DNA of 63,520 bases, filler included, from Hyphochytrium catenoides (Eukaryota; Protista; Hyphochytriomycota): NCBI GenBank assembly GCA_900088475.1. It is 11 parts of 11 records of this genome, joined end to end, with 100 filler letters (N's around TTAATTAATTAA, not from the genome) between each part and the next. Parts side by side here need not be neighbours in the genome. Positions count along the whole stretch, not along the records: positions 16,041 to 34,989 come from FLMG01003216.1; 10 more parts are not named here. One strand, 5' to 3'. Below, piece after piece: positions 15,301 through 35,209 of this stretch. The notes under the pieces were generated by a model, which worked only from the letters and a program-made list of their open reading frames with translations, made no database searches and was not told where the DNA came from. A program made the translations under genes and the position numbers. The first letter of the stretch is position 1. The number at the start of each line of letters is the position of its first letter.

Positions 15301-16167
15301 GAACAAGCCCGGAATACTGCAGTGACGACGGTGACTAAGCATGTTGGAGAATAATCTTTAGGACATACCTTGGCCTTCGTCCATCACTGCAGGAGAAGTT
15401 GTCTCTCCATCCATTCTGCGGTACAGGAGAATGACCTACCAGAGAGGGAAGTGGAATCTTCTTGAGCCACCGCCGAGAGTTTTGTCGTTCACCAGGTCTA
15501 CTCCTATCGCGCCTAGGACATCTTCTCTACCGCTACTCCCCAGTTCTCTAGCGTTACTTCTTGAGAGTCGAGTTTGGCTGCAGTCCACCAATGATCGAGC
15601 TCGCGCAGAGAAGCAATGGCCTTTGACAGCAACGCTGTTCAATAGAACGTCAAACTGAGAGATCAAAGAGGAAAGCGCAAGGTCCTGGAAAGGAAGAAGA
15701 TGGAGGGCAGCAGCAAAGAGGAGTACAGGGAAAAGATAGGTGGAAAGGGCGGTGGTAGGAAAGAAAGGAAAGAGAGAGAGACCAAGAACGGGAGAGAGAG
15801 ACCAAGAACGGGAGAGAAAGAAGAGCGAGAGAGAGCGAGAGAGAGAGCGAGAGAGAAAAAGAAGGAGGGAAAGAGGGAGAGAAAGAGGGAGAGAGGGAGG
15901 GAGCGAGAGAGAGAGGGAGCGAGAGAGAGAGAGAGAGAGANNNNNNNNNNNNNNNNNNNNNNNNNNNNNNNNNNNNNNNNNNNNTTAATTAATTAANNNN
16001 NNNNNNNNNNNNNNNNNNNNNNNNNNNNNNNNNNNNNNNNAGTTAAATCTCTGCAGAGCACCTCCAGTAGTGAAGAACTTCACCTTTCCATCAGCATCAT
16101 CTTTCTGTTGTTTTCTGCTGCCTTCTTTCTCCCTGTGAGTTTCTGATGATGATGTTTCTTGTTGCAT
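6340..16167 (-). CDS. Large multi-exon ankyrin repeat / coiled-coil / WW / ankyrin protein with a Sec16-like C-terminal tail
   Basis: Ankyrin exons: GADPNAVDENGCTPLH (about 13560-13800), GDTLLHL (about 13040-13200), EDTALHLAV (about 8800-8920). WW exon: WVPYTTDDGMTYYYNTQTGEVQWE (about 9860-9935). Terminal exons: SDFYYDEEKKTWILQ|GEED...RPPT and SRYVDTFN...TGA. The 5' end lies across a linker gap, so it is uncertain. Confidence 0.7.
15941..16040. other. Artificial scaffold linker N44-TTAATTAATTAA-N44 (one of ten)
   Basis: The same 12-mer, which gives stops in all six frames, is centred in 100-nt gaps at 15985, 35034, 36609, 42612, 48857, 52168, 53780, 55112, 59607 and 61879. Confidence 0.97.
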
Positions 16168-16647
16168 CGCCGTGAGGTCCGTTCTTCCTCGAGTCCCTGC
16201 TGTCGCCTCTTTTGTGCGACAGGGTCCACTATGTACCTCTGACTGGGTCTTGGGAGTAGGGCACATCAGAGCCCTCTTCTCTGCTATCCTTCCTCATCTT
16301 CCTCACATCTACAAGTGTCTCGAAGGAGTCATCAGCAGAAGTAATAAGCCTATTATGAAGCGCGACAGTCCTCCTCGCGTGGGGGAAGCTACTGAGAGAT
16401 GAAGAGTATTTGCTGATTGAGAGTTAAGTAAGTGAGACTGCAACCCCAAGAGAGGTCTGCGTCAAGAGGCTCGCTATGTCGGAAGTGCTAGGACTCCGAG
16501 AGTACCACAATGTGGCTGCGGCAGGAAGAGGATCTCAAGTCTTTTGACGTCGACAAAGTTCTAGGATCGGTGGGGAGGAACTATTTTCCTTCTGTTGCCG
16601 CTTCGGGACCTTGGTAGCATCATAGTGGGGGGGAACGGATAGGACCT

Positions 16648-18334
16648 ATGCTTTCCTTAGCCCCACGCTCTTCTGTCCCCCAAAGTAAAGGAGAAAGACA
16701 TCAGCACTTTTTTGCTTCTGTGCCAGATGTCATATTGGAGGTTATCTTCGCCCAGCTAGAAGCAAAAGATCTCGACCGATGCGGAGGTGTCTCAACTCGC
16801 TGGAGGACGATCTCTCGAAAAGAAGAATTATGGCGAGAACTCACTTACCGGGACTTGGTCGGTAACCAACTCTCGCACTATGACGGAGTGCAGGGCGGCT
16901 ATGATGCAGTAAAACGGCTGATGGACTTCACCGAGACAGAGGTAACAGGTGGTGAAGTCCATTCATTTGCTCAGTTCTACCAACCGCATCACCGCTGTCC
17001 TCCCTCTCAAGCGCGGGGTGGAGAGAAGTGGAGACAAATTTATGTGGGCAGAGCCACCAAACCCGAGGTACTGGTGATAGACAGGGGAACGGGGTACGTG
17101 AAAAGCGGATGGGATAATGAGGGCCTACGGCGGGATGTCCTCCTCATGGTCGGCTTCACAGGGGCTTCGGATACGCAAGCGCTGGACTCCGTTTTCCGAC
17201 GGATGGGGTACTCCTTAGAGAGGCCAGTGCCGGTTCTTTACATTGAAAGTATGCGCTTCCTGGAGGAAAGGAAAGCAGCTGAAAGAGAGACGATGCGCGA
17301 TCGGGTTCTTACCACCATATTTCGAAAGTACAATGTAAGCTCCGTCTCTGTTGTCAATGAGGCCCTCTGTGCGCTCTATCTCAGCGCCAGACGTAGCGGC
17401 ATCGTGGTCAACATCGGCTTCCAATCCATTACTATCGCTCCGGTGACAAATGAGTGCATCCTTTCCTCATATGTGCGCTGCATCAACGTTGGGGCGCGCC
17501 AGATGACGATGATGTTAGACTATCTGCTAGGACTGAAAGGCTATCACTTTGGAAGCATCTTTGAGGTGAAGGACCTAAAGGAGAAGCATCTATTCGTTGC
17601 CCGCTGCTTTGATACAGCGATGGCTCTCCCCCAGAGCGCCCACGAGAAGAGAATCTCGACAGAGTATCATGATGTGATGACCCTCTCTAGAGAAAGATTT
17701 TTAGTGCCAGAGATTCTCTTCCAGCCCACCCTTCTGGGCTTAGACGAGCATGGAATAAGCCAGGTATTAGCTGAAATTATTGCACAAATGAGAGCGGGGA
17801 CAGGCGAGACCGGTGGGAATGATGGGGACGAGGCGGCGTGGAGTACAATTATTCTAGCAGGCGGTTCAGCAGGTCTGCCGGGCCTTGCAGACAGAATTAG
17901 AACAGATCTCTTGCGGTTAGTAGGAAAGGTATGAGTAGCCACTTGTTCGTGTCTACTGGGCCCCTCTTCTGTCCCATCTGCTCAATAGCTGCTCCTCATA
18001 AGAGCCCCTCTGGCTGTTGAAGTTTCTGTGCTTTCCATTTCCACCACACCACACTTCTCGCATTCGGTTTACCTCACCGTGTCTCCTACCAAGAGGAGAG
18101 TTCTCTATACCTTGGATTCTCGTGCGATCCATTGATTCCACCGGACTCAAGCTGCGCCCACTAAGCACCGCTCTCTCTTGCTCATAGGAAGTAGAGGTTC
18201 TTCTCCCGTCATCAGAGTCACAACACATTGCTTGGCTTGGTGGAAAGCTTATCAGCCAAACTTCCACCTTTCAGGATCGCTGGTGCATTGACCGTAGGCT
18301 TTTCCTGAACGCCAAACCACTGCATGATAGGTAA
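16648..18334 (+). CDS. ARP8: F-box plus actin-fold protein, plant ARP8-type (exons 16648-17928 and 18188-18334)
   Basis: N-terminal F-box (VPDVILEVIFAQLEAKDLDRCGGVSTRWR...LW). Actin motifs IDRGTGYVKSGW, SGIVVNIGF, LSRERFLVPEILFQP and IILAGGSAGLPG. A phase-0 GT-AG intron leads to AWLGGKLISQTSTFQDRWCI. Confidence 0.85.
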
Positions 18335-18755
18335 GTGGATAGCCTGTCATTGGATCAAGGGAGGTTATCAGAATAAGTCATCGAATCTTTCTGCATTGCT
18401 CGACCCTGTCGTAAGGTACTTGGGCAGAACGTTGGGGTCGGAATCTGAAACGAATATGGAAGAAATGTTTACGTTCTCGGACGGTAGCGACTCCGACTAG
18501 AAAGAAAGATAGGCCGGCACTAGGACAACGATCCCACATACTGGTCCGTACGGAGGGAAATGAAGACATGCCATAGAGAGCAGATCAAACGCTGAGATAC
18601 TGTCATTAATGTTAGCAGAGTCCCTCCGCTCTACTAGCACGACGTGATAAGAGGTTGGATGGAGCCTGGCCCGTAGTTATGCCTAATCACCTATACATAC
18701 CTACTACGGGTTCTGTAGTAGATAGAGGTAGGAACATCAAGAAACGGACTTCACC

Positions 18756-20719
18756 TTAGCTTGAAGAGCTCTTCTTATACAGAGCGACAACCGTCTCCAC
18801 ATCACGCTTGCAGCCTAGGAAGATTGGAGCTCGCTGATGGATTTCTGTGAGAGAGAAGAGGAATACGGAGTGTCACATGGAGGAGCCGCTAGGATAAAGC
18901 ACGTAAGGGAAAGTGAATCATGCCAACATAAACTAAAGGGTTTTCGTATGTAGAGGTTGCGGGTAAGAGACAACTTAGCTATTGTCTATGTTCGACGACT
19001 GCGAAGAAGCGAGGAAGCGAGCAAACAAAGGAGAAGGCTCTTGGCTCTCATGACAAGTAGAAAGACAGTCCTTTCGTAAACAGACTCAATAAAGCAACTT
19101 AGCCTACCTGTGGGCATAATTTCCATAACTCTCTCATGACCTGTGGTTGCCATTCCCCCTGCCTGCTCTACTATATAGCTCATTGGATTAGCTTCGTATA
19201 ATAGGCGCAACTTTCCATTTTTACTCTTCTTGTCAGCTGGGTACATGAAGATCCCTCCATACATGAGTGTGCGGTTGACATCGGAAACCATGGAGCCGAC
19301 GTATCGCGCAGAGTAAGCGGGAGACGCATGCTTGCATTCTTCGACGAAGGCTTTTGTTGGCTCATCCCAGTTATTGTAGTTGCCTTCGTTAACCGAGTAA
19401 ATCTGCGATAGAGGAGAGGACCATAACGGGCGTAAGAAGAGACACAACCAAGGGTCAGAAAACAACCACAGCATTCTTCTCAGCGATCTCTTCTAACTGA
19501 CAAGGGCTCATACCTCCCTAAACTCCGGGATAAGAGGCTAACTCTAAGCCACGTATCTACTATGGGAGACAGAAGTACGGCACGTTTAACCACCAGCCCG
19601 GCCTCTCTCTCTCTACCACCTTCAACCTATATTCCCCTTCTGGTTCCCATCCTACTCTTTCTACACGACTACTGGCCAACCTCCTTGTCTTTTACCCTAC
19701 CCTCTTTGGCTTCTCTGGGATCTTTATGTTGGGCATGGAGAGGATGAACTCCCCAATGGTAGGGTCCAGTGTAAAGCCGTGGACACCGTTGCCAACTGTG
19801 ATGACAAGCTGGGTCGCGCTACCGTACATGCAATATCCGGCACCAATGAGCTCTGTGCCGGGACGGAGCATGTCCTGCAAACTAGAGCCCAAATATGAGA
19901 GATAACACAGTACGATCAGTGTACAAAGAGAGATCCAAGGACGACACCAAGAGACAGGTATTTATGAATCGCTGTGAGAAAGGGGAAGCGTCATGCAGCA
20001 GAGAAGACAGTGGAGGAAGATGCCTTCCGTGAGTGACTATCAGAGCTAATGAACGATAAGGCACACTCACGTGGCACCGCCGCTTGATTGTTTCTGGTAG
20101 ATAGCGAAGATAGTACCCGTGGATACGTTACAGTCGATGTTGGAGGAACCGTCCAATGGGTCGAAAGCTATGAGGAACCTAGCTTCTGGCTCGTCCACAG
20201 TAATTGCCTTCTCCTCCTCTTCTGACACCATGAGAGCCACTTTGCGACAGCACTAGAAATAATGAAACTAATGAACTGCTGATGATGGAGATTGATAGGC
20301 ATAGAGAGGCCAGCAGCCAACGCAGAGGAGAATGTAGGAAACACGAGAAAGACACAGATGATTCGGGCTAGGTGGTGAAGACAAGTCCACTGAAAGTAAA
20401 CCCCCTCGTCTGGTAAGCGCAAGCCGGAGAGGCTAAAGGACGTACATCGGGGGGCCAGACAGCAAGAGCTCCTCACCTTTAGCGAGTTGATGAAGATCTC
20501 GTTTGACATGACGTCAAGCTTCTTCACATCATCGCCTGAACTGTTCGTGGCACCATCCAGTCCATACAGTCCTGTAATGCCTGCTCTTCTCACGGCATGG
20601 CTCGTCACCTTGCAGGCGAGGGCAATGGCATTAAAAAGCATTTCCAGATCATTGTCGCGCGTGATCTTCGGCTCAGAGAGCAGAAAGCGCATAAGAGTGA
20701 TTGGGTCACGGTGTTCCAT
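18756..20719 (-). CDS. FBP: Cytosolic fructose-1,6-bisphosphatase class I (5 exons)
   Basis: The spliced product contains [40 protein letters not shown] and [10 protein letters not shown]. All introns are GT-AG and the stop is TAA. There is no transit peptide. Confidence 0.95.
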
Positions 20720-22485
20720 GGCTGTAAAAGAGCTATACTATTACGGATAGAGTGATAGATTGTCGTCTGGAAGAGGACTCCGGACAAGGTAACGTCAGGC
20801 AACTACGAGGTAGCCAAACAGGAAATGACTGTCTGCCGGTCTTCAGAATGTAGCGGCGGGATATTTTCTGGAGACAAGCTGCAGTGAAAATCATCAACCT
20901 GACTGCATGAGATATGGAGGATTGTGAGACAGAGTCCTCTCGAGGTATTGGGATTGAAAAGGTCCGAGAGTCCGAGAGACGGTTGTCTATGAGAAATACT
21001 TAGTAATAACGAAGACCTATCAGACAGAGTGACATCACAAGGGAAATAGATTCGCAAGCGAGAGAGTAGAAAGATGGGAGACAGAGTCCCATCAATGCAC
21101 AAAGAGGTCCTACGACTCCAACATTCCTTTTGACAAGCCTTGAAGCTTCTTTATTTCGGTTATGACTAGAGAGATCTGTTATATCTCTATATTAATTCAG
21201 TATATGAACCGGCCTTCTGACTTCACTAGGCCAATACCCCAAGTAGATAGGAACCCATGATCAACTTTCACTTCTTCTTCCTATAGAAAGAGATGTCCAA
21301 GTGTGTCCAGTGGTGTTCAAATGCATGGGCATGGTGCTCTTAGCTTCAACCAACCCGGAATAGGAAGGGACTGAATGGAGCTCACTGTTGGACTGATTCA
21401 GCTGATGGGGAATAGGTTCAGGGACGCACACAGGTGCAAGGTNNNNNNNNNNNNNNNNNNNNNNNNNNNNNNNNNNNNNNNNNNNNNNNNNNNNNNNNNN
21501 NNNNNNNNNNNNNNNNNNNNNNNNNNNNNNNNNNNNNNNNNNNNNNTATCTCTCTATCTCTATCTCTCTCTCTCTGTCTCTCTCTCTCTCTTTCTCTCTC
21601 TCTCTTTCTCTCTTTCTCTCTCTCTCTCTGTCTCTCTGTCTGTCCTTCTCTCTATCTGTCTCTCTCTCTTGTTGTTCCCATTCTCTCCCGCGCTCTCTTT
21701 CTTTCTCTGCCTTTCTTTCCTTCCCTCACATCACCTCGCGGTTCTCATCTCTCTCTCTCTTTCTCTGTTCTAAGGCGCCTTACCTCTTCCCCATTCTCCT
21801 CTCTCTCGCTGTATTTAACTGAGGCATCTTCCCCTGCTGCTTGCCTGCTTCCAGCTATCAAGCTCAACCTTCCCCTTCCCTCGCCTCGTGACCTCTTTCC
21901 TCTTTGTTTTCCTCTGTTATCCAGTGCCTTCCAATGTTCCTTGTTCTTCCGTCTCCCATCAACAACATTCTCTGCTATTTCCCTTCCATTGTACACTCTG
22001 TCTCTCTCACTTGGCTCCCTATCCTTCACTTTTTCATTCGTTTTTCCTCTCTCCCCACAAACCCATCTCGCCCGTATAAAAGCCCAGTCTAATTTGCTTG
22101 GTGGATGTCGCTGGTCTAACCATTGGTCTGATCGCTTAGGGCACTTCTGAACGCTTTCTAATGAAACGGAAGCATCCGTCGGTCCATGAGCCTCATACTG
22201 TTAACACCAAGCAGGCTGCATTGGAAAGATCGATGTGGACTGCTAATGCCAGAGATCGATAAAAGCTCGATAAGGGGCTAAAGTTGTGAGACTCCTCACG
22301 TTAAACTGAACTCAGGGAAGAGTGAAAAAAGATCTCCCTTTCGTTTGCTGGGAAGCGCTAAGTGCACGAACCACGCCAGGCAGCGAACGCCTCTGCATGA
22401 CTCACCTCGCCTTGCCTTCCCGGCTCTCCCATTTCTCTACATTTTCTTCTTTTCAAGCCTTATCTATCTGATTGGCATCTTCACT

Positions 22486-24180
22486 ATGAGGCTCAAGGGG
22501 ACTCAGGAAGGCAAAGAAGATGCCGTGTTGGCACCCTCTCTCAGCAGGAAAAAGAGCAAGAAAGAGAAGGAGAAGGAGAAAAGAGAGAAGAAGCAAAAGG
22601 CCAAATCGGCCAAAAAGCGTGCACGCGAGGCGAAGAAGAAGGAGAGCCATGGAACTGTTGTGTCTTCATCAGATAGCTTTCCTCCTGTTCAAAAGGAGGA
22701 AACCGACAACAAGGAAGACAATGAAAGAGGTTACTTTTATGGCTTACTTTCCTTCTTCTCACGAAGAGGAAGCTCCAGCCGCCCTGTATCTTCTCCTCCG
22801 TCTTTACCAAAGGATTCTTCTCTTGCTCTGAAGGGCTCACCCAGGACGAGAGACCATCATCAAGGAGAAGCGAACATATTGCAAGAGGAGGAGGAGGTCG
22901 ACCTTCTTTTTCACGAACAGTCATTAGGATTGAGAGTGAAGAGCACCCAAAGGGGCCTTGAAGTCATTCTATTTCCTAAGAATGTCGATGGTACTGAGGG
23001 AGAGGCAGAAAGGCAAGGTAAAGTACAACTGGGAGACGTCATTGTCGCGCTCAATGGCTCTCGAGTCCACTCTTTGCAAGAGTTCAGTTCAGCACTTCAG
23101 GATCTTCCTCGTCCTCTCGCCATTAGAGTGCAGAGGAAGAGAGAGGTAAAACGAAGTGGAGAGAGCGATACGAACATGCTCTCTCCGACCCTGTCCGCTC
23201 TCTCAGATACTGATTGGACCCCTGTGTCCTCACATGAGAGCGTCAGGCAGACAGAGAAGGGGAAGGAGAATGACCAAACGGACTTCCCGGAACCCCCAAG
23301 TTCTCTTATATCCACAATGGCAACTATCGTCTCGGCCCCTGCCGTCATCCTCACTTATCCTGTCAGCTACGTCATACGTTCGTTTGCTTCATCGCCTTCC
23401 AAGGCGCCCCAACCCTCTCCAAACCTAGAGGAGAATGGGAGAGACTCAGCTGCCAAGGAGCTAGCAGGGGTAAAGGATGAAAGCAGAGTACCAAGGGAGC
23501 CGTCTCCCACTGGTCCACTAAATAATGAAGCCGTTACACGAAAAGATGGGCATGAGGGAGTCAGTAGGAGTGGAGAGAGCACAGAGGGGAACATGGTCAA
23601 AGACGCTAAGGCAAATGCCTCTTCTCTTCTTAGTGAGGGAGAGATGAGAGAACTTTCTCATCACCTTCCCTTTATGCTACGAGAGAGGAAACTTGTGCAG
23701 CTCTATGACTCCGATGTCGATGGACTTAGTATCTTTAATCTCTACCGCAAAGCTGCGGACCGAGGTCCCCTCCTACTGCTCATAAAAGAAAGAGACAGGA
23801 AAGTAAGAATCAAAGAAAGAAGAGAAGACGGAGTAACATCGGAGACAAAAGAAGGGAGGAGATTTGGTAGTTTTTTGAGTGGAAGCCTAAAGTCAAACGG
23901 GACGAACTTCATCGACGGACAGTCCTTCGTTTTCTCCCTGTCTCCCATTGTCGAGGTTCACCGGTGGACGGGAAAGAACACTGACTTCTCTTCCTCGTCC
24001 TCCTCCTTCCTTGCCATTGGTGGTGGCAAGGGGGTGTCTCTCCTTCTCTCTGAGGAGATGGAGACTGGACGGAGTAGTCCTTGTGAGACCTTCAACGAGA
24101 ACAAGTCACTAGCTTCCCAGGAGGACTTTCGGATAGCCAAAGTGGAAGCTTGGGCCTTTGCTGCTTATGACGGGTGCTAA
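22486..24180 (+). CDS. Intronless PDZ-like plus TLDc (OXR1-family) domain protein with a Lys-rich N-terminus
   Basis: PDZ-like segment SLGLRV...GEAERQGKVQLGDVIVALNG...PRPLAIRVQR. TLDc segment LYDSDVDGLS...FGSF...SFVFS...LAIGGG...SSPCETFN...VEAWAF. Confidence 0.8.
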   Translation: MRLKGTQEGKEDAVLAPSLSRKKSKKEKEKEKREKKQKAKSAKKRAREAKKKESHGTVVSSSDSFPPVQKEETDNKEDNERGYFYGLLSFFSRRGSSSRPVSSPPSLPKDSSLALKGSPRTRDHHQGEANILQEEEEVDLLFHEQSLGLRVKSTQRGLEVILFPKNVDGTEGEAERQGKVQLGDVIVALNGSRVHSLQEFSSALQDLPRPLAIRVQRKREVKRSGESDTNMLSPTLSALSDTDWTPVSSHESVRQTEKGKENDQTDFPEPPSSLISTMATIVSAPAVILTYPVSYVIRSFASSPSKAPQPSPNLEENGRDSAAKELAGVKDESRVPREPSPTGPLNNEAVTRKDGHEGVSRSGESTEGNMVKDAKANASSLLSEGEMRELSHHLPFMLRERKLVQLYDSDVDGLSIFNLYRKAADRGPLLLLIKERDRKVRIKERREDGVTSETKEGRRFGSFLSGSLKSNGTNFIDGQSFVFSLSPIVEVHRWTGKNTDFSSSSSSFLAIGGGKGVSLLLSEEMETGRSSPCETFNENKSLASQEDFRIAKVEAWAFAAYDGC

Positions 24181-24193
24181 AGAAAATCCTCAG

Positions 24194-24225
24194 ATGAGGA
24201 TGGGGCCTTATGAGGATGGGGCCTT
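24194..24225 (+). repeat. Perfect 16-bp tandem duplication in the 3' UTR
   Basis: ATGAGGATGGGGCCTT occurs twice in tandem. Confidence 0.9.
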
Positions 24226-24908
24226 CAATGAAGAAAAGATTGAAAAGTGAGTACTGCACCGCCGTCAGCTACGAAACCTGCAAGTGGAAAGCAAGTGTCT
24301 AGGGTAAGAGAGAGGCCTGGGTCCATCTATATGAGCTTATCTCAGCTTTATGATATTTAATCAGAATGGAGTTGACCACGCATATGAAGGCGCATTAGTT
24401 GTTCTCCACTCCGTAGCGAGCCATGTGCTCTCTTTATTCTCAGTCATTTGTGCTCTATCGAATGGTGGACTATTCGAGGTGGAGGTCATCACTTTAGATC
24501 AACTTTGTGCTGATGATGGGCTCCCTAGTCATCTTAAACGTTGTGGGTCCTTAACCCTTGAACCTCTCTCTACTCTGGGCTGGCGCGGTCTTTCCCCTTT
24601 CGAGAATTCTGATGCCCTGCCTTTTAAGTGGCCTTCTCCGATCCAAATGGTCCGTCCGCTGTTCTGCAACTCCAGTGACACACTCCTTATTCATTTCTCA
24701 TACAGGGAAGGCTTAGATGGACAAGGGAACAAGGATGTGTAATCAAACCCGAGATTCATTTTACATTATAGGGTAAGGCTCTTAGCATCAGCATCTATGG
24801 AGAGAACCTCTTCCCAGGTGGATCCTATTCTTAAGGCACCTGGAGGGCGCTAGAGAAGTCGTCCTCTCTCCCTCAACTTCTCTGTGTTGTCGCATGAAAT
24901 TATCTGTC

Positions 24909-26517
24909 TTAGAACATACCCGACGCCTGCATGTTACTCCTAAGGATGATGTCCTTGCAAGCGTTAAATACAACCATAACGTTCTCTGTGTCAGTAGCGC
25001 AGGTGATGTGATGGTAGATCTCCTTCGTCTCGCTCTTGTTCTTCTCCTTGAACTTCTTCAAGAAGTATGCACAAGCCTTCTCATAGTCTCCGAGGCCACC
25101 GTCATAGTCCTTGAATGGCTCAATGGACTTGATGTCAATCTGATGACAAGGTACGAGGAGAGGGCAAAAGTGGATGAGTGTCAGTGAGAAGGAACACAGC
25201 CTTCAAAGCAGCGAGAGTGCGAAGACAGCAGAAGGGCTAAAGGCCACAGCAATAACCACCACAATAGTAAGAGTATAGATTGGCCATCTTACCCTCTTAA
25301 TCTTCTCAGCGAACAAGTCGCGCTTGTTTAAGAAGAGAATGACAGCAGATTCAGCAAAGAATCTGTTGTTACAGATCTCATCGAAGAGATTGATACTCTC
25401 AACCATACGGTTGGTGGTGGCGTCCTCATAAAGCATCATATCGTACTCTGACAGCGCAGCTACGAAGATGACGGCCGTGACATTCTCGAAACAGTGAATC
25501 CACTTCTTTCTTTCGTTTCTCTGTCCGCCCACATCGTAGATCTCAAACGTTGTTCCGTCAATGATGTAGCGCTCTTCAACAATACCGATGGTTCTAGCTC
25601 TAGCCAATAGAATATCCTGTTGGTTGGCCAGGTATCCTGAGAGGATGGGAAGCGGGACGCAAATAAGTGTAAGCGACAAAAGCAAGGGAATGACAAAGAG
25701 CAAACAATATCAAAGCAGACGGTTGGCCTAAAGAAGCTCAGAACAGCGGATAAGAGAAAGTGGGGAAGCCTACCAGGCTGCATAATCTCGTTAATCTTGT
25801 TGAAGTAGTAGGAGACGGCCTCAATGATCTGGAACTCGTTCTTTCTTGCCCATACGGCCAAGATACCCGGGTCAGTCCACAGGGCGTGGATGTGACCACC
25901 TAGCGTTAAATCGATCTCTGCGTCGTCACTGTGGAGAAAGAGTTAGTCGGTTGCCGGATGACGATAAAGGAAAGGAAACGTATGACAAGGAAGCGAGAGA
26001 CGGAGGGATCCTTACTCTGTCTTCATGACAACATCATAAGAGTCCTTCCTAACAAGCTTGTCCATCTCATTTAGCGCCACGCATTGCTCGCACAGAATCT
26101 TCATTGCAGTGACGACGTTGCTGTACACCACGTGGGTGAACTGACGTCTTTCTTCGTCTGTTGGAGGGGCACCATAGAGGATCTGCCAGAGATCGGTCCG
26201 AAAGAATTAAACCATGTTCAGGAGTTCTAAGACTAGTGAGAAGGTTGGGTACCTTCATCTGCTTGAAGACCGTACTCTTTCCGGACTCTCCAGCGCCCAG
26301 AAGAAGAAGCTTCACCTTTGCAGCTTCAGCTTCAGCATCCTAGATTGAGCAAACCAAAACAGTCGAGAACGGAGACAGCAAGAAGTGTAAGCAGCGATAG
26401 GGGCCCCTGCGCTTTTTCGGCTCTGCTAACCTTCTGGTTTTGCTCCTCAAGCTCCTTGTTCCTCTGTAGTTCCTTCTTCTGCTCCTCGTCCATCGAGCTC
26501 GACATGCAGGCACCCAT
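24909..26517 (-). CDS. GPA1: Heterotrimeric G protein alpha subunit (6 exons)
   Basis: MGAC N-terminus (myristoylation and palmitoylation type), [28 protein letters not shown] and TCATD. All introns are GT-AG and the stop is TAA. Confidence 0.95.
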
Positions 26518-27321
26518 GGTTCCTTTATATTATATGCTCGGGCTTTAACCCCTTCCTGTCAAGACCGAGGAAGACAATGAGATACCAACCACTTTAGATG
26601 CCAAAGAGTTTAGCCAAAGAGGGAGGTGAACAACTAATGACGCACACGGATGGCCAACCTAAGCAGAACTAACAAGAGAACGGTTAAAGCCCCTTCCAAC
26701 AATAGGACATGGTGAATCGACAGAACTTCACAAAGAGACCCAAAAGCGGTAAAAGCATAGAGCTCGAGCATTTTTCTAATCTCTGCTCACCTATTTACTA
26801 ACAGATTAACGGAGCTAGAGAGCTTCACAGATGCGCTCGACCGGGGCAGATGGAGAACTGAGCTCTGCGAGATGGGTCGGCAGACTTTGTCACTTCTGTC
26901 CTAGGCCAATGGAAACAAACTGACTCCGGACTTGTCTGACGTGCAAGGCGGCGAGCAGGCTAGGGACAGATCAGAGGAGAAGGAAGAAGAGGAAAAGAAA
27001 GAAGAGTAAGATGTCTGCTCCTAAGGAACAGGCGTGGCGGACGTAACGGACGCCGCTCTTTACTAGTCTCTCCTAGCTTCAAAACCAGGAGAGGAGACTC
27101 TAATGGCGACCGAGGACACAGGAGAGAGAGTTAGCGAGTTTGCTGCTCAGCTTTGATAGGCGGGACGGACTACCCTCTCAGAGCAAGAACTAAACATGGC
27201 AATGTACTTCGGAGTAGGCGTGGCAAGCACCAGCGAGAGAAGACAGAGCGAGACCGAGTGATGAACGCGCCAAAACTTACGAAGAGGGTGATCTAAACCA
27301 AGCTATAGAGGTCATGGACCA

Positions 27322-27391
<70 letters not shown>

Positions 27392-27494
27392 CATGGGAGA
27401 GAGAGAGGGAAAGAGTGAGAGAGGAGGCGGGGAGGGAGAGAGCACGTAACTGGACTTGCGGTTGCGTCCTTTCATAGTTGAGACAGGCATTCCC

Positions 27495-28308
27495 TCACCA
27501 GTACCACCATACAACCAATCTTTCTTGAAAGATTCGGATTCGAAACACATCCATCAAACTGTGGGGTAATGAGGTGTCTGGGAACCCTTTCTGAAACCTT
27601 CCATGCTCTGCGAAATATACAATTTTGCAGTAATCCAAGCCATCTGACTCCGAGGAAGGGGCATCGGTATTATATCTATGAAGTGACAAGGAAATGGGAG
27701 GGGGCTCCGGAGTCGTTACACCACTTGCTGGAAAGAGCTAATTGATAATCAAGAAGGAGGGCTTATTGATAACTGCGGCGTGTCCGTTACTTGCTCTTTT
27801 CCCTTGGATTCCTTGACACTGCACACAGAACAGGTCCATAGAGAGGCATGAGTGCACCAGGCGACAAGGAACAAGGGCGAGTCAGATGTTAGGACTGACT
27901 CGCATATACTTGAAAGAAGGTCTACGAGGTGGAGAAGAGAGTGGCGATTTGCAGTGGTTCCTGTGTGCGAGGAAGAGGAGCTAAAGTAGCAGCAAGGAGA
28001 TGTAGGGAGAGAGGGGTGGATAAGAGAGAGACCTCTTTATTTCTGTCTGTCAGGATGGGGAGCAAAGCACCAAAGAAGGAGCTATTTTTAGCCTGCGAAG
28101 GTGGGATCGGGAAGGTTCGCAAACTGAAGTGCATAACGGTAGTGCCACGGAAATCAACGATAAACCGCAAGCGATCAAGTCAAAACGGTAGTCACAAAGA
28201 TACCAAGCGGTCGCCGCCTCGTGTATCACAAAGATAGTAGAGGTGACATGAGAGACAGCAACAGGTCGTATCCCCATAGTCAATAGATATATTGGGGCGT
28301 GTGTGCAT
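27495..28308 (-). CDS. Small 5-exon hypothetical protein (131 aa)
   Basis: Exons 28308-28204, 28092-28033, 27921-27900, 27818-27791 and 27675-27495 join through GT-AG sites into a stop-free frame, MHTRPNISIDYGDTTCCCLSCHLYYLC...VVWWYW*. I recognise no homology. Confidence 0.35.
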
Positions 28309-28482
28309 CAAAGAAAGCCCATAGAGGCTCCAGAAATAGCCGTAACGGGCCAATGTAACCGGGCAAGACGGGAAACCACCCTAGAACGACAGAAAGAGTA
28401 GCAAACGAAGATGAAGGCCCGGCTCTCTCTGGTATGGAGCATGGTAACAACGGTACAAGTATGTTTTTGGACGTCTGGCCTG

Positions 28483-31400
28483 CTATGCTTTAAAGCGCGA
28501 GGCGACATCATGTAGAATGTCGTGGATCCTAGGCCACACTGCGGTGGTGCATTGTTGAATGAGCTGGATAAAATACTCCTCTGCTTGCTGATCATTTAGA
28601 TCCAGGCGGAACTTTTCCTGGACCTAGCAGGCGTCGAGGAATTAATATGGGGAAGGGGATGTCACGTTTTAGCGTAGGAGATGTGGATGTAAGATTAGCC
28701 AAAGGCCAGGGGTAAGGATCAGAAGCGAGAGTGCTTAAGGTCATAGCAACCACAGGGTGTGGCGCAGAGTTGAACCCAACGAGAGGCACCAGCTGCTAGT
28801 CTCGAATCATTAGAGACACAGGATGTACTCCACGCCAGGGTGAGAGAAAAATCGAGAGGCTAGATCGGAGGAGGTTCACTAGTCCCTTCCTTAGGTGGCC
28901 AAACCGGCACTGCTCTTGTAGCAAAGGAAGATGAGACGGCTGACCTTGGCTAGTTTTGTCTCAGGCTCATCCCTAAGGTCTGGGATACCGGCGTCCACCA
29001 TAAGGCTAAGGAGGTTCAGAATTAAGCGTGCGTGCTCTCTTAAGCGATTGTAGGCCTAATTGGAAGACAAGAAGTTAGAAGCAAAATCAGGCCAGACAAG
29101 GAAGAAGTGCACGTGAAGAGGGTCCAAGACGCTTCCGTTAGGAAGAAGGCTGATGCATATTCGTGTCAGATTTTGATCATTTACCTGACAGCAGTGGAGG
29201 ACAAATTCCTTTTGTCGCTTCTCCCCACCGAAACCATCGACCATCTCCTAGAAGAGTCAAGCATGCAAGTTGATGTCAGCCAACTCAGTTGCTCAGTTAT
29301 CACTGCCCTTGACTCTCCAGACCATTAATGGTACTGTCCCAGTCCCTCATTAAAATCTAAATTCTAACCCAGCGCGAGGCATTACGTGTGCAACCCAGTA
29401 CGATGCAAGTACGTTTGCATCCTCTCCGACCCTTCTGACCTTAGTAATTCGAAAGGCTGGCGCCATGGGCTTGGGATCGCGGCCAAACAGGAAGCCAAAA
29501 TCAAGATGGAATAGACGGCCATCCGTCTATTGTAGTGACATATGGAGGACAGTAAACAAGTTCACCAAAGGTTTAGAGAAGGTTTAGACACTTTGAACCT
29601 CCGAAGACGTCGCCAGAGTAACAATACTTAGCATAGTCCGCAAACTGTATCAGATTGAAGGACAGATATGGTTCTCAATAAATTGAAATTAGTGGTTTGA
29701 TAAAGAGAAACAGGCTCTCAAGACGAGACTCCCCATAGTGGCCCTGGAAAGTAAGCAAGAAGAGCACCTACCAGAAGCATCAGGTTCTCTTGGTGCCTGT
29801 CACCCACCCCTAGCAAATAAGTGATCACGCAATAACCCGCGCAGGACTTGACGTATGCATCTAAGACCTGTTAGTTCCCAAAAAGGATGAGAGAGTCAGC
29901 TCGGTAAAAAAGAAGTAAAGTGTCAGCTCAGTGTTTTGCTTCGGCGAGAAAGCTAAGCAGCGTAGTCTCTGAGTTGTGACACGCGAGATAGAATAGTAGG
30001 ATAAGCTGAAACAAGGGACCACTCCACAGAAGCAAGGTTCTCGCAAGAAGGAAAAGTACGATGGCCTACCTCGGGCCTCACTCCGAGCTCAGCTTGTGGG
30101 TCTGGATTGGCTTCCCTTAGAAAGTCTAGAATCGGGTTGTTTCCTCCCCTAACTATAACCGACTTAAGAGTCTTACTACCGCTCACGAACTCCATTAATC
30201 CATCCCGCGGACTGTACGAGAGACAAGAGAGAATGAGTCGGGGAAAGAGTTTGCATCGCCTCTGCTCTCATTCTGCTGCGTGCATCTCCATTTATCTCCA
30301 CTACGCGTGACTGGTTACTCCCTTCTCTGAGAAGGCTCACGACGGTACTCGGTATGTGCCACCTTTCTCACTATCTCAAAAGACCAACCTACCTCGTTGC
30401 TAGGACTCTGTAAGGGGTCAACTTCAAATCCAGATTGATCTTCTTTAGGAGCCGATCAATCAATATGATCATCTGGTAGAATCATATCAGCAGCGACAGG
30501 ACAGGGGCTGTACGGGGGAAATGATGGAACGCAAATAAACTTCGATCCCGGCTACAAGATCGCCAGAAATGTGGGAAAGGTGCACCAATATGCCAGGCGA
30601 AAGCACACGCAGCCCAAATAGAAGTAGTGATCATCACCTGGATGACAAGCTGATCCTGTCTCATATCGTCCCCGCTTTTGAATACTACTTTATAAGGGGT
30701 CCCCTCCTTGGGTTTATCAAAGAGCTGAGTGATCGCTCTCCTCTGCGATCGTCTATCTCTGTCCTTTTCGCCTACTGGGGCTCCCCCTCCAAAAGCACTT
30801 TCGTCCCCTCCAAAGAAGTCCTTATCTGAAGAAGCTTTCTCCTCTATCGCGAGAGTTCGAAACTCTATAACCGCAGGGTGCATAGCGCTTTTGAACATGA
30901 AAGCACTCGGGGGGTTGAGTCCAATGGCCTAAGAATTCCAGGCCCCAGACACCGCCCAAGAAAAGCGTATAAACTGATGAGAAAGGTGGGTGAAGCTGAG
31001 AAAAAGAGTGTCTGGCATCCTACCTGTTTTGAGGGATCAAGCGGCATCCTGACGGCAGCAACCCCTTTGGGTAAATTAACGCCTTTCAAAAGTTCCCTGA
31101 GCTTCTGCTCCTTTTGTGAGTTATTACCCCTGCTGTCCCGCGCAGCCCGCTGCTGTTCAGCGATAGTCATTACGAAAGTCTCCTGTCGGAAAGGAAGAGA
31201 AAAAAAAAGAGGAATGTTTCAGCAACCTGCCGCCGACATCCAGAGTAGGGCTCAAGAAAACCTTTATCTTTAAATGAGAATGAGACCAAAAGACCAGAAG
31301 TGTTTAGCCCAAGGGAGATCATGCGGAAATGGGCAACGACAGGCATGGTGAATGCAAGTAAGCAGTGCCACAATAAGTGGGCAAAAAATCTCCAAATCTC

Positions 31401-34400
31401 CAAACGCCTGATTGAGCTACAAAATATACTACGTCCCAAGACTGTGTGGATGCAAGAACGAGCTGTGGCACAATGGCAGAAGAAGGAAACGACGAAATAT
31501 AGCGAGAACAGCGGATACCTGCGCCACTATCGCCTGATAAATAGCCGAGGACTCCGGCTGCTCCAATAATCGAGAGGTAAAGAACTGAAATATGTTTGCG
31601 AACATCGGACCATCGTTGGGGTCTTCCATAGCTACTTTTAGGTACCTGAAGAGGCAGGGTCCTTAGCGATCGGTGCAAGTAGAAAGAACTAGAAGCAAAG
31701 CGTAGAGGGAAGAGAGAGAAGGAACATACAGCACGCATTAATTCAACGCCCGTCTTGTTAGAGGTGGGAAGGGAGAGAAGGAAGCGATGCGCCATATCTA
31801 CAGCAAACGAGACCCTTCCCTCAAGTGAGCAAAAGACTAGGGCTACAGATTTAATCACCAAGACAAGAAGCAGGTACCAGTACCAGTATAGGTAGTTTGC
31901 AAGTTCCAGGCTCTGACAGGCTCGAGATACAAGGAATGTGGCAAGAAAGCCCATTCCTCCTCCTCCTCCTCTTCCGCTGACGACTTCATCTCCTGTTGCA
32001 TTCAGTGCCGTGTTGAGCATGTTTTCCGTGCCTCGCGCCGAGCCCGGCTCATAGCGTAAAGCCTAGCATTTGGCAGGCAAAGACATAAACTATTAGTCAT
32101 TTGGTACACTGAGCGCCACGGGACTCATAATTCGAGAGTTAGAAGCTTCACTGAAAGGACAATAGAGGGTCAAATGTGTCCTTGAAGGGGATCGATCAAA
32201 GGGGCAGCTTTTGTTCAGGGAAAAGGAGGCTAAAACGGGCGCCACACCTGAACCAACTGCAAGAGGTAATCTAGCAACTCTTCATTCGTCGCCTTGGACA
32301 AAGTCTTCACGGCGAACTCCCGGACAATATCCATCGAATACTCCTTCTGCCTACAGTGAATGCAGTCAAGCACTAAAAGACCATGACGGCGGGGAATAAT
32401 CTTGCCCTCTGTCCCCTCCTTCGCACTTCCGTTTATGCGTCATCACTGTCCGCCGTGTGTCTATATCCTACCATTCATGCATACTTACCTTCCTAGAAGC
32501 TTAAGAGCGTCTGCAATCTCAATAGGAGCTCTTTCAGCCCAAAGCTGCAGCAATTGGCCAACTTGTTGAACCTCACCCTCATCCTGCCAGTCCACGCATA
32601 GGAGGAACTTCGTCAAGGCCCTGAATAGTTATAATGTTGTTGGGGAAAAGGAAACATGATCCTTTCGTGAGTGATAGTTTGCTATCATCCAGTCATATAA
32701 CCGATGTCTCGCTACTTCACGTTAGAGTTCAGGACTAGAAGAGAAAACCTAAGTCCCAGCATAGATGCTCATGGCAAATAAAGGACTATGAGGGTGAACC
32801 GGGTAAACGGTAGGAGAAATGTCTAAAACGGAAGGGAGAAGCTTAGAGGAGGGTGTCAGAAGGCCGATACTATACTATGGAGTAACCACTGCAGTACCAG
32901 AGATTATATACGAAAGAGAGAAAATTTGAACGTGACCACCTATGATCATACCTCGGGTTCGTCGTAAGGGAGAAACGGAACTTCCATAGAAGGTCTTTCT
33001 CTCCCTCTGTCAATTCGTCCGCTGGACTGTTGACGACCTGCTGGATGACTGCTCGCTCTTCGCTATTAGGCTTGAGATCGGGATCAATGTGAAGTCTCCT
33101 CGCCCCTCGCACAAGCTGAAAATGGCAAGTAAGCGGAACCACACAGAAGCTGCGATGGGCCACCAGGAAATAAGCAAAGAGAGCAAGCACGGAAAGGACG
33201 AGGTAACTAAAGCTCCAGCCGAATTGTGAAAAGAAAACGAGCACTGGCTGGAGTTACTAGAAGCCATCTTTTTGATAAAACAAGCAGACGTCTCCAGTTT
33301 GATACATATAATTCGCTTGGAAGTGTGAGCGGCAGTCTACAAGATCGAGACAACGGATGTATTACCTTCCTATACTTGTGATCGACTGGATTGTCAGCGC
33401 CCATCTCCGTATCAAATACCCAGAGTAGCGCTTGTTCGGTTGTGGTCACCTCTGTCTTGAGAGTGCCTCTTCCCCCATCTCTCCCTTGGACAGAAGAGTA
33501 TGCAGTATGCCTATAGCTTGGCAGCGCCTCGGAGCGAATACGCAATGTTCCCGTTACATCACCAGATGTTGTGCCAGGTCCCTCCATCTCTGAAGTATCC
33601 CCAAGCGCAGCCCGCACAGCATTGATTTGAGTCTCGATGGACGTCAGACTGCCGTCTAAGAGGTTTGGAAGGGCAAAAGTTATTTTGGTTTGTTGTACGG
33701 ATGCGAGAGAGGAGCGGAACAAGCCACTTGAAAATTGAGAATTGGACTTAGTGTCAGAGTCCGGATTTGGTTAAGGCCGCTGCATTTCCAAAGCAAAGAC
33801 AAGGTTGGCCATTGAAATGGAACTGGGCCAAGGACAGGCATACCTATCGCTGAAGGTGCCCTTGCGTTAAGGTAACCGTCGCCGTCATAGAGCACTGCAG
33901 CGCCAAAATAGGGGAGAGATGCGTAAAACTTGACGCTGGTCAACTTTCTTATGTGGTCTGTGAACAAGCACTCGTTGCCAGAGCCAGCAGAACGGCTGGC
34001 AGCATCTCTTGCTTGCTAAAAGATGAAATAGACAGTGAGAATAATGAAGCAATGATTGAAAAACTAGACAATTTGTTTAGACGACAAGGGTCCGAAGAGC
34101 TAAACGACTCAACGACTCTTAAGCCTTACGATGAGTCAAGTGGGACGGAAGACTCAACTGAAGAAAGGCAAGAGTAATCTAGATTGTCCGATCGCAGAAA
34201 GAGCGGATTATGAAGCTGTCAATCCTAAGGAGGAAAGCGTAGCTTTCAAGTCGAACTCACTCTCATCTGCTTGAATGTCATGTCGTCCAGCCAGTTAAGT
34301 GAAGGCATTTCGCTGCAAAAACAATGGCGATTTTATCAGGACCACAGTGAAAGGGAAGATTCCAGTGTTTCACGGCAGATTCGTACACTAATGGCAGACA

Positions 34401-35209
34401 GCGAAACACAGCTTTCCGCCGGCAAAAACATGCAACACGCTATGACCTAAGACATCAGATATATAGTAACCCATACCAAATTGAGCCACGCTAGACGAAG
34501 GATATATAGACAGGCTAGCAAAGGCGCCCCTTTAGTCAGTCCTTACCCTCGTTCATACTTCTCTACCAATTTCTCGAGCCTGTACCATTCCTGCTCTTGT
34601 TTATCGTCGGGACCTTCCGGCGTGCATTCAAATCGGGGGGTCTCCGACTGGGGAGCCATCTAGAGTGCAAACGCCGAGTCATATTATTGGCATAACGTTA
34701 TAACACCACGAGGAGCACCCAATCCAAGGCATAGGTAGACCAAGACAAAATACTTTCAGGCCTATCGGATTCTAAGCGGCAATTGCTTGGCAACCAACAG
34801 ACCTAACGGGCCTTGTTTGGAAAGTTTGCCTTTAGACGATAAGGACACTTGGTAAATGATAGGAGTGAGTAGGAAAGACTTAGAAGCAAGCCAAACAAGA
34901 AATAGGCACCCTAACCGTGAACGAGGAAGCTGTAAAAAAACTAGAGGGAGCATATTATCCTTACTCGTAGTTTCTGGAGTCCTTCCCTGNNNNNNNNNNN
35001 NNNNNNNNNNNNNNNNNNNNNNNNNNNNNNNNNTTAATTAATTAANNNNNNNNNNNNNNNNNNNNNNNNNNNNNNNNNNNNNNNNNNNNTTTCACCGAAG
35101 TCTGCAACGCGCACACTCCCTCCGACGGGAGGTGCTTTCCATGAAGCTCTCCGTATTCCACGAGAATATCATGCGTGGCGACAAGAGGACGGAATAGACC
35201 AGGAGGCAT
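28483..35209 (-). CDS. VPS34: Class III phosphatidylinositol 3-kinase Vps34 (about 20 exons, one linker gap near the 5' end)
   Basis: [85 protein letters not shown] and VQEKFRLDL, ending in TAG. The putative first exon [15 protein letters not shown] lies beyond the gap. Confidence 0.93.

Follow-up and report, generated by a model that had tools for sequence, protein, structure and literature searches.

An F-box-actin protein of the ARP8/SUSA2 family encoded on a contig of Hyphochytrium catenoides

The window analysed here, a stretch of 63,520 nucleotides joined from 11 parts of the Hyphochytrium catenoides assembly GCA_900088475.1, holds a two-exon gene for a protein with an F-box and an actin fold at positions 16648-18334 (plus strand), within the piece 16041-34989 (FLMG01003216.1). 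In the list of open reading frames, a plus-strand frame runs from the ATG at 16648 as far as 17934, and the frame, its translation and the splice signals bear out the coordinates of the original prediction, which had described a plant-type F-box actin-related protein (ARP8). Exon 1 (16648-17928, plus strand, 427 codons) is a single open reading frame that runs from the start codon through the F-box and a linker into the actin fold, most of which it covers. The sole intron (17929-18187, plus strand, 259 nt, GT..AG, phase 0) follows K427, and exon 2 (18188-18334, plus strand) adds 48 codons and a TAA stop (18332-18334), which complete the actin fold with its final strand and helix, EVEVLLPSSESQHIAWLGGKLISQTSTFQDRWCIDRRLFLNAKPLHDR. 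The motifs quoted as following the plant protein are all present, three in exon 1 (VIDRGTGYVKSGW, ALYLSARRSGIVVNIGFQSITIAP and WSTIILAGGSAGLPGLADRIR) and one in exon 2 (AWLGGKLISQTSTFQDRWCI), and the description of a single-intron gene in an intron-rich region also stands, with one intron here against many in the neighbouring genes.

A Pfam search of exon 1 returned F-box-like (PF12937; residues 23-66, positions 16714-16845 on the plus strand; E 6.2e-10, 39.1 bits against a cut-off of 24.3), F-box (PF00646; E 5.3e-7) and Actin (PF00022; residues 207-424; E 1.5e-21), with all domain scores exceeding the curated cut-offs. Because all of these domains sit in exon 1, the fusion of F-box and actin is independent of the splice; the F-box plus actin architecture of plant ARP8 that had been proposed for this gene is thus present in one open reading frame, and the best matches of the protein are themselves F-box plus actin proteins. 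The linker (residues 67-125; 16846-17022, plus strand) is helical and then passes into a low-confidence loop (residues 102-117) in the pLDDT profile. It carries an F-x-E motif (FTETEV) that is seen after the F-box in relatives and whose E96 is nearly invariant in the alignment. A comparison by hhalign with the N-termini of ten streptophyte ARP8s matched the F-box only (residues 21-65, probability 91.7%), with no extension into the linker, and homology of the linker with that of the relatives is only suggestive. The actin fold (residues ~126-427; 17023-17928, plus strand, running on into exon 2) was delimited by sequence and fold matches in the PDB. Its first phosphate-binding loop, D145-R-G-T-G-Y-V-K152 (17080-17103, plus strand), is kept by comparison with the D-N-G-S-G-x-x-K of actin in the alignment blocks, and in its second phosphate loop N255-I-G-F258 (17410-17421, plus strand) replaces the D-S-G-D of actin, which is the derived signature of the family.

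Exon 1 alone was used as the query for searches, tree and fold prediction, and exon 2 was handled separately. The splice junction was placed by the GT/AG signals, the reading frame and the way exon 2 aligns with relatives at the C-terminus. The exon 2 product, EVEVLLPSSESQHIAWLGGKLISQTSTFQDRWCI..., lines up with the strand and helix at the C-terminus of relatives (Brassica ...VRVIPPPCGVDSAWHGAKLISNLSTFPGPWCIT...), and exon 2 was aligned both to the plant ARP8 C-termini AWHGAKLISNLSTFPGPWCITRKQF and to the C-termini of other family members; in this alignment the relatives stop at about the same distance as the TAA of exon 2. The GTAAGT overlapping the stop codon could serve as the donor in a longer gene model, but this model was rejected, since the relatives terminate there too. 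A search of sequencing runs found no RNA run with the locus, and splicing and expression of the gene are for that reason predicted from DNA.

Downstream, in convergent orientation, lies a gene for an FBPase of cytosolic type without an N-terminal extension (18986-20719, minus strand, at least 3-4 exons), whose last mapped exon ends ~650 nt from the stop codon of the F-box-actin gene. Scores for the FBPase exon were 133 bits against pea chloroplast FBPase, 124 against PDB 5iz1 and 122 against human FBP1, and the exon for the C-terminal domain lacks three residues present in all aligned plant and animal FBPases. Between the FBPase gene and the divergent gene for a PDZ plus TLDc protein come a scaffold gap (a run of N's) and then an extended CT-rich microsatellite, translated as SLSLSL in several frames (together ~21440-22150); a similar CT repeat occurs at ~27300-27400. 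The PDZ-TLDc gene (22486-24177, plus strand) is intronless and encodes 564 aa, rich in lysine and glutamate at the N-terminus; word-index searching gave a single relative for it, at an identity of only 27%, which hints at a poorly sampled lineage. Exact look-ups of its ORF, of the exon 1 ORF of the F-box-actin gene and of a contig-bounded fragment matched no sequence on record. A multi-exon gene at ~24909-26517 (minus strand) encodes a G-protein alpha subunit that starts with MGACMSS, an N-terminal motif of the acylated type, and ends in ...NMQASGMF, with no Cys at position -4. The best 60 matches of its switch-region exon among solved structures were Go, Gi, transducin and a mini-Gq construct, the best of them animal Go/Gi, and plant GPA1 was absent from these 60. 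Identity of this exon to human Go is roughly 65% as counted on the printed alignment, and in an Atlas feature search it fell among broad clusters only, of fungi, nematodes and plants. Further along, a Vps34-like class III PI3-kinase is encoded in many small exons at ~28000-33722 (minus strand), with the PIK accessory domain at 32870-33244 and the first part of the kinase domain at 30482-30898. Neither Rfam nor tRNA scanning gave a match in the piece 16041-34989. Taken together, the neighbouring genes argue against a plant host and speak neither for nor against the stramenopile one of the original prediction, and they give no placement beyond that.

The locus was also examined in Logan contigs from two DNA samples of one organism (2017 run X1 and 2011 run X2). 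These contigs span 16100-20900 with few differences, apart from short breaks between contigs, and hold the F-box-actin gene continuous with the FBPase gene in both samples. The 2011 and 2017 samples are ~1% different. Paired alternative contigs, each at about half depth, occur in both samples at 16191-16333, 18086 and 19824-20033 and are several percent divergent in non-coding DNA, which appears to be the pattern of a heterozygous diploid or two-haplotype organism. A soil metagenome of 2024 contains a 259-bp contig identical to the end of the intron plus exon 2, and two 151-bp contigs of a rhizosphere metagenome show 1-3 differences within exon 1. The gene reproducibly belongs to this organism, apparently a heterozygous one that lives in soil.

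Relatives were collected by several kinds of search. The word-index search returned angiosperm and conifer proteins annotated as actin-related protein 8, with 26-30% identity at 92-95% query coverage in the four full-length rows and 50-67% coverage of the query in shorter or partial ARP8 rows, and the ESM Atlas feature search returned three Streptophyta-dominated clusters of F-box plus actin proteins at 0.93-0.95. An exhaustive phmmer/HMMER search over 1.84 billion representatives placed F-box plus actin proteins first, at 33-37% identity and with alignments from about residue 112-127 to 424-426, which is the whole actin fold; hundreds of conventional actins rank next, matching only residues ~215-424. 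Those matches with a full-length N-terminus have both F-box and Actin in Pfam. The proteins come from Chara braunii, two Closterium species, several angiosperms and Mesostigma viride, and the match from ERR2041121 belongs to the 1KP transcriptome of Gonatozygon kinahani (PMC13730384). A further match comes from run SRR8128904, and Clim_evm48s210, from EukProt, has the gene-identifier style ('Clim_evm') of Corallochytrium limacisporum, a unicellular relative of animals. Another match, from the same accession series as ERR2041121, is presumably also 1KP. Members from unicellular streptophytes are thus those of Mesostigma (P0030), Closterium (P0012/P0049) and Gonatozygon (P0014), with one from a holozoan, Corallochytrium (P0025). 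In Closterium sp. Yama58-4 a single 597-kb contig carries two ARP8 paralogues, CAI5465446.1 and CAI5465448.1.

ENA/JGI metagenomes contributed an F-box plus actin protein of 606 aa (P0055/P0165). P0165 is encoded at 4736-6556 of L007 (ENA ERZ27293304, contig k119_583399; 6.9 kb, 70% GC), a contig with two further intronless, tightly packed genes, one with a weak GH8 match; its source is a compact-genome eukaryote, and the protein branches next to the streptophyte ARP8s. A single-protein scan of JGI metagenomes for further environmental relatives found none. In the exhaustive search of 1.84 billion representatives, none of the other eukaryotes sampled yielded an orthologue more than 37% identical, and hence neither this genome nor a close relative of it is in the searched collection. 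Identity to the streptophyte proteins is 28-37%, no higher than among distant members of the family.

The relationship was assessed by a maximum-likelihood tree (LG+C20+F+G4, PMSF) built from the actin part of the window protein together with 28 diverse actins and 15 other F-box-actins. On the actin domain alone, all 16 F-box-actins are united in a single clade apart from the 28 actins (UFBoot 98 / SH-aLRT 99). Rooted on the actins, the order of branching is Corallochytrium, the window protein, P0055 and then the streptophyte clade (support 96/84), so that the window protein falls outside a streptophyte clade that includes Mesostigma and Chara; a quick tree of 77 rows agrees. The proteins of the window, Corallochytrium and P0055 are long branches, and long-branch attraction could help their grouping. 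The outgroup of this tree consists of actins only, without reference sequences for Arp1-Arp10, and the exclusion of other ARP classes rests on the ranking in the exhaustive search and not on a full ARP tree.

Derived residues agree with the tree as regards membership. The NIGF core of the second phosphate loop is common to the window, Brassica, Closterium, Chara, Corallochytrium and P0055 proteins; all F-box-actins shown have N-I-G here, within VVNIGF except in Mesostigma (LINIGM), where actins have the pattern V-x-DSGDG-V-x-H, with DSGD, DSGQ, QSGD or DSGY in the rows shown. N255 and F258 are common to all or to 15/16 of the streptophyte members, and to Corallochytrium and P0055 as well. The first loop has the form GYxK(F/S)GW throughout the F-box-actins in the alignment, and the window protein also shares with the family A283, where actins carry an invariant glycine. 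Among 19 diagnostic columns, defined by a residue in >=75% of streptophyte members and <=10% of actins, the window protein matches 8, P0055 6 and Corallochytrium 3.

Fold comparisons were performed on an AlphaFold2 model of exon 1 (47-row alignment; mean pLDDT 82.8, pTM 0.83). Against the PDB the best matches were conventional actins both by phmmer (E 1.5e-21) and by Foldseek (E 7.5e-20, target-normalised TM 0.62-0.71, 23-27% identity), and against the Atlas the best match was a streptophyte F-box-actin cluster (TM 0.78 over residues 19-427). A TM of 0.78 over that range means that the placement of F-box and actin fold relative to each other is also alike. We conclude that the window protein is a member of the ARP8/SUSA2 family, as the original prediction had it in calling the protein a plant-type ARP8, on the strength of the best matches, the 98/99 clade, the VVNIGF loop and the whole-protein similarity to the streptophyte cluster. 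The fusion of F-box and actin most likely happened once. The window gene has neither a nested position within Streptophyta in the maximum-likelihood tree nor the intron positions conserved there; it is a family member, though not shown to be a streptophyte-type orthologue.

For the comparison of introns, exons were mapped on the genomic loci of Brassica rapa ARP8 (12 exons) and Closterium ARP8 (13 exons). Nine intron positions coincide between Brassica and Closterium in both column and phase, a striking conservation across streptophytes (loci L004 and L005); the ARP8 gene of Chara extends over 38.6 kb. The window gene has 0/9 of these shared positions. Its exon 1 is uninterrupted at every streptophyte intron site that falls within it, and its own intron sits between the last two streptophyte introns, matching neither of them nor any other of the 11-12 introns. 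GC3 is 0.55 in the F-box-actin gene, against 0.51-0.61 in the neighbouring genes. An AU test that forced the window protein and the embryophytes into one clade cost 26.3 log-likelihood units at p 0.071, which is no rejection. Recent transfer of plant DNA is unlikely, because the protein lies outside the streptophyte clade, shares no introns with it and has a GC3 like that of its neighbours.

The original prediction had left two origins side by side, horizontal transfer and an ancient family widely lost, with nesting in Streptophyta as the sign of transfer. No such nesting was found: the protein stands outside the streptophyte clade, the AU value for placing it with the embryophytes being 0.071. 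The position outside crown Streptophyta and the 0/9 introns favour the old, patchily kept family, and the AU result leaves room for an ancient green transfer. Such a transfer would have brought the gene from a streptophyte or other member of Viridiplantae long enough ago for it to ameliorate, and the Corallochytrium copy would be a second transfer. It would account for named close relatives that are all streptophytes but one, for an extremely patchy distribution outside streptophytes, for the lack of an orthologue above 37% identity in any other sampled eukaryote and, through a cDNA-like or intron-poor arrival, for one intron where the neighbours have many; a place next to the embryophytes is also tolerated by the AU test. 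It is a live rival, though the less likely account given that the maximum-likelihood tree sets the protein outside the whole streptophyte group, Mesostigma and Chara included, that none of the nine conserved intron positions is common, that GC3 equals that of the neighbours, and that 28-37% identity to streptophytes is no higher than among distant members. Old vertical descent with massive loss is the likelier reading, since the protein is not nested in the maximum-likelihood tree, shares no intron and has a counterpart in Corallochytrium.

Two further explanations can be given very little weight. An independent fusion of an F-box with an actin or ARP, its resemblance to ARP8 being convergent, would draw on the promiscuity of F-box domains as fusion partners, on the hhalign match to the F-box and not the linker, and on the low identity. 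We consider it highly improbable against an actin domain that by itself groups with the F-box-actins at 98/99 (in a tree against actins only), against the NIGF loop core and other derived residues that the protein carries, and against the agreement in domain order, spacing and predicted whole-protein geometry. Equally hard to sustain is an origin of the contig in a green-lineage organism or green contaminant, with the gene as that organism's own ARP8. The FBPase exon does score marginally best against pea chloroplast FBPase (133 bits, 122 for human), and soil and rhizosphere metagenomes, in which DNA of plants and algae is common, contain short identical contigs. Yet animal-type or engineered chains make up all of the 60 best matches of the G-alpha exon among solved structures, with no plant GPA1, and the FBPase gets similar scores against plant and animal enzymes and carries a private three-residue deletion, where plant cytosolic FBPases are much more alike. 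The ARP8 introns conserved in streptophytes are absent, and the protein falls outside Mesostigma, Chara and the rest in the tree.

We therefore favour, at a probability of roughly 70%, the reading that the gene encodes a genuine F-box-actin family protein, the family being known from its plant representative ARP8 (SUSA2), and that it sits at a compositionally native locus of a non-plant-looking eukaryote, with a mechanism of the SCF type and a single old fusion behind it. The fusion would have arisen once, before the diversification of streptophytes, and would have been retained patchily, in streptophytes, Corallochytrium, the high-GC eukaryote and this host. In the lineage of the window the gene may have been resident long enough to lose, or never to gain, the streptophyte introns, and would have gained an intron of its own and reached the local codon composition.

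Arabidopsis SUSA2/ARP8 binds ASK1 directly and is needed for autoimmunity mediated by paired NLRs (PMC7562919), and nucleolar localisation has been reported for Arabidopsis ARP8 in a paper cited by PMC11096116. By analogy, the window protein is likely an SCF substrate receptor. Its F-box (residues 23-66) would attach it to Skp1 within a ubiquitin ligase of the SCF (Skp1-Cullin-F-box) type, and the substrate-recognition or regulatory module would be the domain with the actin fold, presenting substrates or sensing a ligand. This domain retains D145, G147, G149 and K152 in its first phosphate loop as well as the GG in the adenine loop, which makes it plausible that it may bind nucleotide. ATP hydrolysis or actin-like polymerisation seems unlikely from the residues present, because the positions of actin D154, D157 and H161 are changed (VVNIGFQSIT).

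The pairing of an F-box with actin has been called plant-only and serves as an example of plant-specific domain innovation (PMC7562919; PMC11096116), so that the literature agrees with the original prediction that it is usually described as plant-specific. The window gene contradicts such statements, as do the proteins of Corallochytrium, Mesostigma, Closterium and Gonatozygon, and the family is probably older or more mobile than stated. The family itself was known already; its presence outside plants is new, and the evolutionary implication is modest. Either the fusion is much older than plants and was massively lost, or it moved between distant eukaryotes, and either reading alters how ARP8/SUSA2 is interpreted. 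The non-plant proteins also offer systems in which to ask what an SCF receptor with an actin fold recognises. More tentatively, and somewhat short of an even chance, the F-box-actin module may not be a plant invention at all and may instead be an ancient SCF receptor of eukaryotes, already present before Archaeplastida, opisthokonts and the host lineage split and since lost almost everywhere. If so, it would have a conserved non-plant function, unrelated to plant NLR immunity, that is open to study in protists.

Among known systems, conventional actin has the same fold as the window protein, which keeps the ERF..PE.LF and GG loops of actin and differs from it in the added F-box, in a family-specific subdomain 2 and in the residues N, F and T at the positions of actin D154, D157 and H161. 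The Arp8 of the yeast and animal INO80 complex is likewise an actin-fold protein and shares the name ARP8, but that family has no F-box. Identity with INO80-type Arp8 was rejected on the presence of the F-box and on the exhaustive search, which ranks F-box-actins and then actins, as the original prediction had also distinguished the two; no Arp8 chains are among the rows listed in the PDB sequence and fold searches, which hold actins instead.

Corallochytrium Clim_evm48s210 and P0055/P0165 resemble the window protein in having F-box and actin, in the NIGF loop and in their place in the same clade outside the streptophytes. They differ in their length (both have 606 aa, including acidic tails or long insertions), in very long branches (2.5 substitutions per site for Corallochytrium and 1.6 for P0055) and in an identity of ~25% to the window protein, and the P0165 locus has 70% GC and packed intronless genes where the window has an intron-bearing locus of 49% GC. 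Plant ARP8/SUSA2 (Arabidopsis At5g56180) and its streptophyte-algal orthologues (Chara GBG68572.1, Closterium CAI5465446.1 and Mesostigma Mv09647) differ from the window protein in the TFLEFGNI segment of subdomain 2, which is not conserved, in an identity of only 28-37%, in the insert between the F-box and the F-x-E motif, which is longer in the window protein, and in having 11-12 introns (Brassica/Closterium) where the window gene has one at a private position, among neighbours that are not plant-like. They nevertheless have in common with it an N-terminal F-box, a linker and a full C-terminal actin fold, the derived VVNIGF loop, the GYxK(F/S)GW first loop, the LAGGSAxLPGLA loop, the C-terminal AWxGxKLIS..STF...WCI motif and a similar length (475 aa in the window protein, 460-525 aa in plant ARP8 and its orthologues), and with them the best mutual similarity is found in sequence, in language-model features and in predicted structure.
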